Assembly: GCA_038496445.1 (NCBI GenBank)
Contig: JALMLS010000062.1
Span: 310,001-374,000, forward strand
Source: Trichosphaerium sp. ATCC 40318
Lineage: Eukaryota; Protista; Tubulinea
DNA length: 64,000 nt
Direction of reading: 5' to 3'
The translations under genes and the position numbers were made by a program. Shown piece after piece: positions 39,946 through 44,660 of the stretch (its first letter is position 1; every line of letters begins with the position of its first letter). Under the pieces are notes generated by a model. It saw only the letters and a list, made by a program, of their open reading frames with translations, did no database searches and was not told the DNA's origin.

Positions 39946-40438
39946 AAACTTGAATAAAACTAAAAAAACGTGGACACCAAACGACAACCCATTTTGTTCC
40001 ACCTCACAAGCGCTGTATACTCACAAGGGAAAAAGTTACCACGATAGAAGGTATGTATGAAATACGACTTTCGACATTGTTTATCGCTAGGTACCAATTA
40101 CTCCGTTATCTTTTTATGGTCTGGTGAAATGGTACATGGTTTGAGTATTACAGAAAACAGTAAAAGACGCTTGGAAGATTGTACTGAATACATTAACGCA
40201 AGTTCTCTTGGTAGCGTAAACAGTATTGATTCACACTTCGCTAGTTAGAAAGTACGCCTGTTTTATCACTTTTTCTTAACAATACAACAGCGACAACAAG
40301 TCTACTACTAAGTACGCTATTCTCTATCATTTGTCTTATTTTGAAATCCACCGGCGAAACTTGTTTTACAAAAACAAATCATGTGGGAAATTAGAATACC
40401 GAAATGTTGTTTTAGCCTTTCTAATGTTGTTTGTAGAA

Positions 40439-43400
40439 ATGCGTGGAGCCCTTTTCTTGGCCTCGCTTTACTTGATCTCTCATATTGCGACCGTACACGG
40501 TGCTTCAAGACCAACGGCTTCTGTACCAAACTGCGATGCTGCTTCTCCTGACTGGGGCTGTCCTCCTGCTGAGTACAGAGTATTCCGAAGTGGTAGAATC
40601 GACAGACTTACCTGTAACAAAAGACCAGAACCTCGTATGTCATGGGCTACAAAGGTCGTTCGCCACAATGCTTACAGCACTTGGGCTGGAGCAGAAGATG
40701 CTAAAGAGACCGAATACATTCCTGAAAAAGTTATGGACATTAGCATTCGTGTCAACAACTATGACTTCAAATACCGCGGTATTCTCATCTACGCTCAAGA
40801 CGCTGACGGTAATAGAGTTGGTGAATGGCTTCTACCTGATGAAAAGAACCGTACGTTGCATAAAATAACACAAAAGGTCATTTTTGTTTTCGCTCGTTTA
40901 GTTTTTTTCCGGATGTTGTGATTTGCTTCTTTTAATCGTAACAATTTATTTTCAGACTTTGTTTTTTGCTTTTTTTTGTACTTGATGTTCACGTGTTGAC
41001 TTCTTTTTATAGCATTCTTTCAATTACCTTGGCCTAATTCACATGAGTGTCGCCAAAGCATTACACACAACAGCGCTGAACTCAAGCCTCTCAAGTCAAC
41101 ATGGAAGTGGAAGGCTCCTCCAAGAGGAACCGGTCCAGTAACATTTCATTGCTTAATTAAGCAAGGTGATGCTAATACAGGCGCCTTTTATTGGCCAAAC
41201 AACCGCGGAACGGGACCACTCAAACTCACAGAGTCAACCAAGCGTAAACCACGTCAAACATGGTTTCAATCCAAGGTAAGCCTTCTTTTTTTATTATTGT
41301 TCTGAAACTAATATTTCTTCTTAGAGAGGTCAATCTTGTACCGCTAGATGTGCTGAAGAGAATCTACAGTGCGATGTTGTCCATATGGAGCGTGTAAACA
41401 GCCCAACAAAAATTGAACAGCTCATTATTCCACAAAGTTTCCCTTGCAAACTTCCATATGTCAGTGGTTGTAGCAACAAAGGAGCTACAATGGGTACTGA
41501 TGGCCTTTGCTACTATGATGACACAAGATGTGCCGCACAAGGACGTAATACTGGACGTGTTACTTGTGACTCCAGAAGCGGTGATACAAGAATCGGGTAC
41601 GCTAAATTCAATCACACTTTTTTTTCTATCTTTGTACTTACATTTTTTTAGACTTCGTATGTGCAAATGTCTCGCAAATACTCTCCCTCCAGCCAACCCA
41701 GGTAGAACTGTTATTGCTGCAAGAGGTGCAACTTCACCTGCTACAAAATCAACAACATCTTTCTTGTTCATGGCTCTCGCTGTCCTCGGTTTGACGATGC
41801 GATCTTCTGGAAAGATGACAACTTCAGTCGTCTTGGCTCTCTTCCTCATCGCTTTGGTTTCCTTCCCAACCACTCAAGCCCATAACTGGCAATTTGGAAT
41901 TGGTAGAAGCGCAGATGTTGCACTTACCCAAACACCATGTCCATCAAGAAGACAAGCTTCTCCTCACGTTCAAGTTGGTCCAAACCAAAAATTTGAAATC
42001 GAATGGTCTGTTGGGCATACTTCGCCTTCATACTACGTCATTGTCAAGGCTGAAGATGAAGCAAGACTTAGAGAGGTATCTTTCGACCTTATGGAAGCAT
42101 ATATGAGCGAAGCACCAAACAGCGCTTGCCAGAATCTACCTGTATACCACAGACAATTCAGAGCTCGTGATGCTGGTTTTGATGCGTTCGAACAATACTA
42201 CAGCGGTCCAATCGCTGATACTTCTCCAAACTTTCTTCCGCGGCCAGAAGCTTTCGGTCTATGGGCAGATGACGCTACATTATTCGGATACAGGAACGAT
42301 CTTGAAATCAGAAATTATTGCGAATACACCAACAACAAGCTTGACTTTGTCCTTGGTATCTTCAAGTTCGAACATCATGCGCACAGACCTGCTGATGCTG
42401 ATATGGTAAGACTTTCAATACCAAATGGTGCTGCATTCGGTGACTACGTTATTCAATGGCTATGGAGAGGTTACAGAGATTGCGTTGATGTTAACTACGT
42501 CAACAGACAAGTAACAGATATCTACGGTCTTCCAAACCCTGCTGGTGGATTCAGGTTAGTCAACGTGTTGAACAGTTGTTTTTTTTATTTGCCTCTTTTA
42601 TTTTATATTCATCTTCTGACTTAATTGTTTAGCCGTATTGATCACTGTTACTTCCCTAATCCACGACAAGCATTTGGTAAGTACAACTGGCATTTTTTGA
42701 TTTGTTTTGATCTAAAAACGTGATAATTTGAAGAAAAACACGTGTTTATTTTCGGGGTTTTTTCTATTTGGTTCATCTCGTATCTTACTAAGTTTTTTCT
42801 CTTAGATTGTCACAGAATTTACAACGATGTTGATGTTTGTAAACTTTCTTGTGAGCGAAGAAGTTCATGCGCAGGGTTCATGGTCCTACCTAGACGTCTA
42901 CAACCAAGCATATACAACTATCGTGCCAATCTTACCCATCCGATATGCAAAGACATTGTGAGATCTCTGGGAGAACCATGGGATTCAGTAGACATGTGCA
43001 TCACCATCCAGCCAAGAAGAGTATCAGAGACATTCGGTCCAGAAGAAGTAGTGCACGCAGGTGACCCTGCTTATAACTCAACATGTTGGATGAAGGGATC
43101 AGGACGTCTATTCCCTGGATTCGTTGTTCCGCCACAACATCAAAATATCCCATGGAGACACGGAGATGAATGCATATCTTGTGATGATGTAAACCTAAAC
43201 AAAAATGTTACACGTCAACCAAAGTGGCGAATGACAAACGACTGCAGAAACTGCGACTTGGAACCAAAAACCGATACACCAGCCTTCGATCCACCTAGAC
43301 TCGTCTTGAAGGAAGCTGGTATGGCATGCGACGGTCATTATAATTACCAATACCTTGGCAGAGACAAACCAAGACACCACGATTGCCCCGAAGAAACATG

Positions 43401-43677
43401 GAGGGATTGCAAGAAAGAAGTACTAATCAGAGGACGTATTGCACCTTGGAACGCCCGTCACTTTGCTAACGATTGTGCTGCTGCCGCTCTAAGAGATTCA
43501 CAATGTTCCGATACAGTCTATACTATAAAACGCACCGGTTTGTATTACAGCGGTGGATTTGGATATAGCTGTTATTGTATGACAAAGAAAGCTTGTTGTA
43601 ATGGATGCAGACCAAGAGCAATGACAAACACTCCAGAACTCTGGGATATTCATACTATTCATCGCGGATCGTCATAG
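40439..43677 (+). CDS. Secreted multidomain protein: Reeler domain, Cys-rich module, double hydrophobic segment, LPMO-like His1 domain, PAN/apple-like Cys-rich modules
   Basis: Signal peptide; Reeler motifs YRGILIYAQD..RVGEW, ITHNSAELK, WKAPPRGTGPVTFHCLIK; continuous spliced frame through LALFLIALVSFPTTQA-HNW, EIEWSVGH, YVIQWLWRGYRDCVDV; CKLSCERRSSCAGF. Confidence 0.8.
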
Positions 43678-44660
43678 ACTTCTTTAGCTACCAAAGTAGC
43701 ATTAACACAAATAAATCAGTTACAGCCCAAAATACATCATTTTGTTGTTATTTTTAATTTTCTTTGCATCACGTGCTAAAAGTCTATCAGCCTGAGTTCT
43801 TCCTGCTGGCTTCAGCTTTATTTTAATATGACTTTTGATACTTGAAGTAACCATGCCGCTCTGCTTAGGATGCCTCCAATGATTGAAGATATTGTACTGC
43901 AAGCGAACAATAAAGGGTTTTCAGTATTCATTGGATGAGTTAGAAAAGACAACTTATTTGAATTGTCAAAACCGAATTTTTTTTTGGAACTGAAACGTAT
44001 TTTTAGTAGACAGTGATAGGCAGAAATAGTACACGCGAAGGCACAGCCTTAACCGCCAAGAGGCAGACCTCTGAACCGCAAAGTAGAGATGGAGGAGCGT
44101 AAGCGGGTTGGTAATAGCCGCCAAAAGGAAAGAAAAGGCTCAAAGGAGCAAATTAAGAGGTGCTCAGGCGGAGGGTAGGCGCTAATAAAACAGTGTATTT
44201 TGGAAACGAAATATGCAAAAAGTCAAAGCACGTGATTTTTTCTTTTTTTAATTGTCAATCTTTCATATTGCGCTCATTAATCTTTCATCAATCTCAAATA
44301 CGTAGGGGAGATAGAAACTATTTTAAGTAGAGTTTTTGGTTTTTAGTTTGCATCATTTTTACATTAGTCAGCATTCATTCAGATTGATTAAGGGAGGTGG
44401 GTAGAGGTCGCGGTAGCTGTTTTGTTATGTTGACGCTCTGTTGCGACGTTTGGGAAGTGAGAGAGAAGTACAAAAGTCTCTTGCATTCCGTTACCATCTT
44501 TTCACAGCGTAGAAGTATGTTGACTTCGTCCGCACAGTATAGAAGAACGAAAAAGGTAGAATTTTAGTTGTTATTATAGGGCTAACAGCAAATTGCTTCT
44601 GTTGGATTTCACCATTGAAAAGTGCTCTATTTGCGTCTAGCCTCATTGCCTGTAGAGAAT

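Follow-up and report, generated by a model that had tools for sequence, protein, structure and literature searches.

Gene structure and RNA contigs

We analysed a stretch of 64,000 nucleotides from Trichosphaerium sp. ATCC 40318 (Tubulinea; assembly GCA_038496445.1, contig JALMLS010000062.1, positions 310,001 to 374,000 of the forward strand), hereafter the window, in which one gene appears to encode a Reeler protein and, behind an internal signal peptide, a domain resembling lytic polysaccharide monooxygenases (LPMOs). The splice model derived from the sequence has six exons on the plus strand (40439-40850, 41013-41275, 41325-41596, 41652-42554, 42633-42676, and 42806-43677), all five introns have GT..AG borders, and the spliced frame of 921 codons is uninterrupted, with its sole stop at 43675-43677. 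The stop-free passage from the Reeler part into the second signal peptide, described in an initial annotation of this locus, was thus re-derived as part of the 921-codon open reading frame (ORF), and the hydrophobic pair, the loop TMRSSGK, the His codon at 41881, the His at 42016, and YVIQWLWRGYRDCVDV, which begins at 42445, were all found again where that annotation had placed them.

The precursor opens with a signal peptide, whose predicted cleavage position follows the rule of V at -3 and G at -1, and continues through the Reeler domain and a Cys-rich module to two closely spaced hydrophobic segments, the first of which lies within TSFLFMALAVLGL (aa 351-363). The second is a putative internal signal peptide with an h-region of about 13-17 residues and the c-region PTTQA, placing T at -3 and A at -1, and the codon of His393 (41881-41883) follows directly after PTTQA. 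This His opens the LPMO-like domain, referred to here as the HNW domain, which is followed by a Cys-rich C-terminal region (Table 1). A further hydrophobic segment was not found downstream of the HNW domain in the window protein, and tblastn searches with each part of the gene detected no second copy of any part in the 64-kb window.

We checked the gene model with RNA contigs from four public runs (X1-X4) aligned to 40300-43800. All five introns are absent from the spliced RNA-type contigs of these runs. Contigs of X1 join exons 4, 5, and 6 with zero differences from the locus, and two of its records (3 and 4) are exact spliced contigs over the Cys-rich C-terminal region; the contigs of X2-X4 represent versions that are 3-10% diverged from the locus. 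In X4, a 696-nt contig (record 19) covers exons 2 and 3 and exon 4 up to 41867 in spliced form, so that it takes in the first hydrophobic segment, the loop, and the greater part of the second signal peptide, and the His codon is crossed by X3 record 14 (41803-41894), which is identical to the locus, and by X2 record 8 (41838-42176). A separate transcript starting near 41800, which the initial annotation had named as a sign of two genes, is not supported, as exons 2-4 are joined in contigs that reach into the second signal peptide. Overlapping contigs cover the junction, but none extends over the whole gene, and such contigs are no proof of a single molecule.

Conserved junction before the histidine

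A HMMER search with the 224 residues from His393 retrieved 364 representative proteins at E ≤ 1e-3, including 167 at E ≤ 1e-10. The junction was analysed in the best 150 of the 364 homologues, 120 of which align from query residue 1. These 120 start with HNW (116), DNW (3), or HQW (1), and the motif lies at most 60 residues from the protein start in 34 of them and at residues 88-921 in the other 86. Position statistics were calculated for the 83 clearly internal forms, defined by a motif past residue 100.

The conservation of a His directly after the second hydrophobic segment, on which the initial annotation depended, is borne out by 81 of these 83 forms, in which residue +1 is His. Residue -1 is Ala (71), Gly (8), or Ser (4) in all 83 (binomial P ~8e-41 versus local composition), and residue -3 is likewise small throughout (Ala 36, Val 22, Ser 9, Thr 7, Cys 6, Gly 3; P ~5e-25 versus local composition). 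Residue -2 is variable and often charged, and Pro or Gly occurs at -7 to -4 in 65 of the 83. Judged from the aligned sequences, the -1/-3 pattern before the His is that of a classical signal-peptidase site.

About 80 of the 86 internal forms have two hydrophobic segments upstream of the His; 70 of them were found automatically, and 13 of the 16 apparent exceptions proved to be two segments merged by the sliding window. The hydrophobic cores have family medians of 12 (first) and 13 (second) residues and are therefore short for typical membrane helices, and the c-region is mostly 5 residues. The intervening loops are 1-35 residues long, with a net positive charge in 48 of 70 homologues and a net negative charge in two. 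In the 25 residues before the first segment, Ser is enriched 1.9-fold and Ala 1.6-fold. The arrangement of an S/A/P-rich stretch followed by a hydrophobic core of about 12 residues is a candidate layout of a glycosylphosphatidylinositol (GPI) signal, in an internal and not a C-terminal position. By this resemblance, the Ser/Ala-rich stretch and short core upstream of the second signal peptide look like a GPI signal.

A Met at 12-30 residues before the His is present in only 33 of the 83 internal forms; internal initiation is therefore not the conserved route, and Met371 of the window gene is not a conserved start. Each protein has one HNW domain and one junction, and a check of the family for polyproteins of more than two parts revealed none. 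Overall, the junction displays the features of a signal-peptidase polyprotein, namely n-, h-, and c-regions, the (-3,-1) motif, and a preceding stop-transfer-like segment, and the predicted cleavage would make the His directly after the signal-peptidase site residue 1 of the mature protein.

Fused and standalone relatives

Full-length fused ORFs are present on transcripts (Trinity or MMETSP assemblies) of the amoebozoans Flabellula baltica, Rhizamoeba saxonica, and Cavostelium apophysatum and of the rhizarians Mataza sp. and Lotharella globosa, as well as in MMETSP0437; the Lotharella member is listed as uncharacterised in UniProt. Many further fused members fill metatranscriptome contigs of about 3 kb. 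In addition, the homologue P0033 is encoded by an uninterrupted 3.7-kb fused ORF (L005:6001-9738) on a 20.3-kb DNA contig with eukaryote-type neighbour genes. A stop codon between the two parts occurs neither in the window gene nor in more than 80 homologues.

Standalone relatives also exist. The transcript of one of these, P0015, whose cluster includes acantharian members, has a 122-nt 5' untranslated region with an in-frame stop and encodes a 15-residue N-terminal signal peptide ending in NVKA directly before HNW. Taken together with the fused forms, P0015 indicates that the same His comes after an ordinary signal peptide in certain proteins but, in the majority, after an internal one. In an unrooted maximum-likelihood tree of the HNW domain (78 rows, quick search), fused forms are found on both sides of the deepest starred split, and standalone forms are scattered over at least seven places. 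Standalone forms that lie very near fused ones in the tree may be truncated contigs or shorter transcripts.

About half of the homologues possibly carry a later membrane segment. The downstream product is extended in some family members: P0013 (1616 aa) has a WW domain at 1581-1608, which, being terminal, implies a cytosolic tail, and P0004 (858 aa) has a Mucin2_WxxW repeat at 675-755.

Conservation and fold of the HNW domain

Across an alignment of 78 HNW domain sequences (A1), W3, R9, H46, and Y74 are invariant, and H1, N2, H29, Q31, D144, Y149, D174, W195, G197, Y198, D200, and D203 are conserved in at least 90%. Besides the first residue, the candidates for a second brace histidine are H46 and H29, the former of which (His438) lies at the end of strand 38-44 in an AlphaFold 2 (AF2) model. 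Y198 stands within a W.W.GY.DC.DV strand and is a candidate equivalent of the axial Phe/Tyr of AA10/AA15. The family motifs are H-N-W-x3-P-S-R-A, W-A-T-G-H, and G-x-Y-I-V-x-W-x-W-x-G-Y-x-D-C-x-D-V, and they resemble the AA10 motifs (H-G-x4-P-x-S-R, W-x2-T-A-x-H, and a strand ending F-Y-x-x-x-D-V), a resemblance that serves as a lead only.

The AF2 model, built with A1, has a predicted local distance difference test score (pLDDT) of 93.1 and a predicted template modelling score (pTM) of 0.90. The initial annotation had proposed a comparison of such a model with the AA9-AA17 and X325 folds, and LPMO-type folds do top the list of structure matches, with Z up to 7.7. Using an exhaustive structural aligner, the model matches the AA15 enzyme 5msz at Z 7.5 (118 residues, root-mean-square deviation 2.7 Å, 20% identity), LaX325 (6ibh) at Z 7.3, or 7.7 on second look (125 residues, 13-14% identity), and AA9, AA10, AA11, AA13, and AA16 at Z 5-6.6. 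LPMO or LPMO-like proteins make up 12 of the top 16 matches, and model residue 1 pairs with the mature His1 of the enzyme in each LPMO-type row. The Z values are moderate and therefore show fold class, not function. We accordingly describe the modelled domain as an LPMO-type beta-sandwich in the sense of fold class only.

Weaker searches point in the same direction. The best Pfam match among the 78 members is one to AA9 at a sub-threshold E of 0.0057, and the best match of member P0054 to PDB sequences is the AA10 LPMO 5opf (E 0.016). A structural neighbour cluster in the ESM Atlas (TM 0.53) and the nearest clusters by language-model features (0.92, 202/256 features) both carry LPMO_10.

Reeler domain and Cys-rich regions

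The Reeler identity of the upstream part was shown via its homologues because the domain in the window gene is split by an intron, and Pfam searches with the window's single exon pieces gave no Reeler match. A phmmer search with residues 1-225 matches 79 of the hit proteins, with E down to 5e-48, and Pfam Reeler (PF02014) was detected in 25 of 42 aligned homologous N-terminal domains (alignment A2; best E 1.2e-11) and above threshold in several full-length homologues. Compared with P0032, the reference row of A2, the window's two Reeler exon pieces show 41% and 49% identity. For an AF2 model of P0032:19-215 (pLDDT 92.7), the best structural match is the F-spondin reeler domain (3coo, Z 11.9). 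Homology and predicted fold agree in identifying the upstream part as a true Reeler domain, as the initial annotation had it. The next structural neighbours of the P0032 model are cytochrome f (Z 8.9) and copper-binding YcnI (Z 8.2), which are leads only, and M41 and H132 are nearly invariant in A2. A metal or redox role for the Reeler partner domain is possible.

The Cys-rich module between the Reeler domain and the hydrophobic pair is common to 34 homologues. It matches the last ~85 positions of Pfam Glyco_transf_18 (GnT-V) at sub-threshold E values (0.0085, 4.5e-4, and 4.1e-4; Table 1), and a relationship to the small C-terminal domain of this enzyme family is possible. The C-terminal tail, common to 40 homologues, had been assigned PAN/apple-like binding modules in the initial annotation. 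This assignment found no Pfam support: the window tail had no Pfam match, 17 full-length homologues likewise gave none to PAN, and a language-model search of the tail returned PAN clusters at 0.90 with just 127-134 shared features, which is a lead only.

With regard to the surrounding DNA, the window contains 71 copies of the palindrome CACGTG versus 10.8 expected from shuffles, none of which reaches 71. Copies in or next to the gene are located in intron 1 (40990-40995), in intron 5 (42739-42744), and in the 3' flank (43770-43775).

Table 1. Features of the fused Reeler-HNW gene, in window coordinates, and sub-threshold matches of its Cys-rich module
Feature	Position	Strand	Basis
N-terminal signal peptide, aa 1-21, MRGALFLASLYLISHIATVHG	40439..40501	+	translation; hydrophobic segment aa 3-17
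Reeler domain, aa 22-225, split by intron 40851-41012	40502..41275	+	homologues, Pfam, fold
Cys-rich module and Ser/Thr/Ala/Pro-rich linker, aa 226-352, split by intron 41597-41651	41325..41760	+	
First short hydrophobic segment FLFMALAVLGL, aa 353-363, stop-transfer or GPI-signal-like	41761..41793	+	
Basic loop TMRSSGK, aa 364-370, predicted cytosolic	41794..41814	+	
Putative internal signal peptide MTTSVVLALFLIALVSFPTTQA, aa 371-392	41815..41880	+	translation, family statistics
HNW domain, aa 393-616 (224 aa), LPMO-like beta-sandwich from His393	41881..42552	+	
Second His, His438 (domain H46), in EIEWSVGH, candidate second brace arm	42016..42018	+	
Tyr590 (domain Y198), in WLWRGYRDCVDV, candidate axial tyrosine	42472..42474	+	
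Cys-rich C-terminal region, aa 617-921 and stop; introns 42555-42632 and 42677-42805	42553..43677	+	
Glyco_transf_18-like matches of the Cys-rich module	window 41325-41594; P0032:213-298; P0079:212-296		sub-threshold Pfam

Proposed processing and alternative explanations

We consider it likely that the gene encodes a two-part secretory precursor from which signal peptidase frees His393 as residue 1. In the proposed sequence of events, the N-terminal signal peptide would direct both the Reeler domain and the adjoining Cys-rich module to the lumen of the endoplasmic reticulum (ER), the first short hydrophobic segment would stop translocation, and the short basic loop would remain cytosolic. The second hydrophobic segment would then re-enter the translocon as an internal signal peptide, and signal peptidase would cleave after PTTQA (aa 392), leaving His393 as the first residue of the LPMO-like domain with a free alpha-amino group, which together with the invariant His438 could form a copper histidine brace. 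The downstream product would be secreted, as expected from the lack of a later membrane segment in the window protein. The Reeler product would be membrane-held, either by the two leftover hydrophobic segments or, following use of the GPI-like signal, by a GPI anchor. In an engineered DAF-hGH fusion, the part preceding an internal GPI signal became GPI-anchored, and this was so even when a signal peptide took that place (Caras 1991, PMC2288913). As a guess at why the two would be made jointly, synthesis as one precursor could deliver the copper protein 1:1 with a partner at the surface, perhaps a metal or redox one.

Several observations weigh against this reading. The signal-peptidase cut, the copper binding, and the oxidative activity are all inferred only. 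Three homologues (P0033, P0067, and P0068) have a single hydrophobic segment before an AxA-His site, and these are therefore not explained by a simple hairpin topology; internal GPI signalling may account for these as well. With respect to the fold, the Z values of at most 7.7 fall in a range that, as the tool warns, may reflect the common beta-sandwich alone, Foldseek against the PDB gave weak and mixed beta-sandwich matches, the HNW family profile gave 0 matches against PDB sequences, and no Pfam LPMO family was matched at threshold by the window domain or any of the 78 members. Finally, the X4 contig over exons 2-4, which ends at 41867, is 4-6x deeper than the downstream contigs, a difference that is milder in X2 and absent in X3 (41072-43164).

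The last observation would fit an alternative in which there are two genes or transcripts, with the HNW protein made from its own mRNA or by initiation at Met371 and the read-through frame being incidental. The second signal peptide of the window gene does open with Met371, and the N-terminal homologues that adjoin fused ones in the tree could represent such shorter transcripts. The depth drop in X4 could, however, come from collapsed paralogues just as readily as from a shorter isoform, and contig depth was rejected as evidence for a short isoform, summed contig depth being unreliable. The stop-free frame of the window gene and of more than 80 homologues, the suitably placed Met in just 33 of 83, the spliced contigs that tie exons 2-4 to the second signal peptide, and the complete fused ORFs, seen in transcripts from five named protists and once in genomic DNA, all stand against it, and we regard separate expression as very improbable. 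An uncut chain, in which the two segments would stay in the membrane as a lasting hairpin and the Reeler and HNW domains would both be exposed outside the cell on one protein, seems very unlikely on different grounds. Adjacent hydrophobic segments joined by a positive loop would fit a hairpin, and cleavage is predicted rather than observed. The cores are nonetheless short for membrane helices (medians 12 and 13), a retained helix gives no reason for the -1/-3 rule in 83 of 83 forms or the +1 His in 81 of 83, and in standalone relatives this motif lies on an ordinary N-terminal signal peptide. In such a hairpin, His393 would not be N-terminal and there would be no brace.

A further possibility accepts the processing as proposed and concerns the released product, which might be an X325/Bim1-type copper-binding or copper-handling protein or a non-catalytic binding module. 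LaX325 ranks first or ties for first among the structural matches (Z 7.3-7.7), the conserved Asp residues D144, D174, D200, and D203 could give an extra ligand as in X325, N2, W3, and R9 are atypical of characterised LPMO families, and Pfam did not recognise a carbohydrate-binding module in the tail. By contrast, AA15 fits equally well (Z 7.5), the Atlas and language-model neighbours carry LPMO_10, the weak sequence matches go to AA9 and AA10, and the window product is without the GPI anchor typical of X325 proteins. We consider this alternative rather unlikely, though by some way the most serious of those discussed here.

Returning to the precursor cleaved by signal peptidase, the initial annotation had presented it as an anchored Reeler protein and a released histidine-brace oxidase that might attack prey cell walls. 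The continuous ORF, the putative internal signal peptide with its conserved site, the LPMO-type fold, the invariant candidate second His, the conserved candidate Tyr, and the Reeler domain are all retained here, and the oxidase function, the PAN/apple modules, the GPI anchoring, and the prey-wall role were found to be unsupported or weakly supported. A broader proposal, which we put forward tentatively, is that a family in Amoebozoa and Rhizaria accommodates the need for His as residue 1 by means of an internal signal peptide, with maturation carried out by ER signal peptidase and a hydrophobic region doubling as a GPI or stop-transfer signal. Its members would yield, from a single translation event and in a 1:1 ratio, a Reeler partner bound to the membrane and a new class of LPMO-like copper enzyme that is secreted, the two acting together at the cell surface, e.g., on prey or cyst-wall polymers.

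Comparison with known systems

If the proposed processing is true, the recognition of such genes would change, as they escape filters that require an N-terminal His. Heterotrophic protists would then contribute a large LPMO-like family that has no classification so far, signal-peptidase polyprotein processing, otherwise known mainly from viruses, would have a rare cellular case, and a functional link between Reeler domains and copper proteins would be suggested. In full-text literature searches, we found no description of a Reeler protein fused to a histidine-brace domain, no cellular LPMO-type precedent for an internal signal peptide or polyprotein processing, and no description of an LPMO of such design in amoebae. 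By its sequence, the HNW domain is unclassified, lying outside existing Pfam families. The design combines things of known kinds, i.e., an LPMO-like domain and signal-peptidase polyprotein processing.

To our knowledge, the catalytic domain is N-terminal in every characterised LPMO-type protein, since His1 contributes its free amino group to the copper site. The HNW family shares with AA15/AA10 LPMOs (Pfam LPMO_10; AA15 of Thermobia domestica, 5msz) the beta-sandwich class, a predicted first mature His, a candidate second His, and the late W...Y.DC.DV strand. An N-terminal H-x5-P-(x)-S-R motif is presumably also common to AA10 and the HNW family, which is a lead only. The HNW family differs in its own HNW...R signature and in sequence matches that remain sub-threshold, and most of its members carry the domain mid-protein behind an internal signal peptide, whereas the known LPMO domains are N-terminal. 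The structural match to X325 (LaX325, 6ibh; Bim1/Cbi1 of Cryptococcus) relates the domain to extracellular histidine-brace proteins outside the classical CAZy LPMO families. These are, however, single N-terminal domains with their own GPI anchor, while here the GPI-like signal is on the Reeler part and the His domain has a Cys-rich tail.

The upstream part resembles known Reeler proteins (F-spondin, reelin, FRRS1/SDR2, and insect Noduler) in having a Pfam Reeler domain by homology and fold, but in those proteins spondin, DOMON, or cytochrome b561 modules come after it. The region between the two parts of the precursor, with an S/A-rich linker, a short hydrophobic segment, and then the second signal peptide, is similar in layout to the DAF-hGH construct (Caras 1991, PMC2288913), in which a GPI signal or a signal peptide was inserted between two lumenal domains; that construct is artificial, and GPI anchoring of the Reeler part here is a candidate.

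As for the processing itself, the glycoprotein precursors of flaviviruses, hepaciviruses, and bunyaviruses contain internal signal peptides after stop-transfer segments, and host signal peptidase releases the next ectodomain; for bunyaviruses, see the review PMC7926653. The Trichosphaerium precursor likewise has a putative internal signal peptide behind a stop-transfer-like segment. Unlike the viral polyproteins, it belongs to a cellular protist gene family, and the proposed cut would serve chemistry, by providing an N-terminal His.

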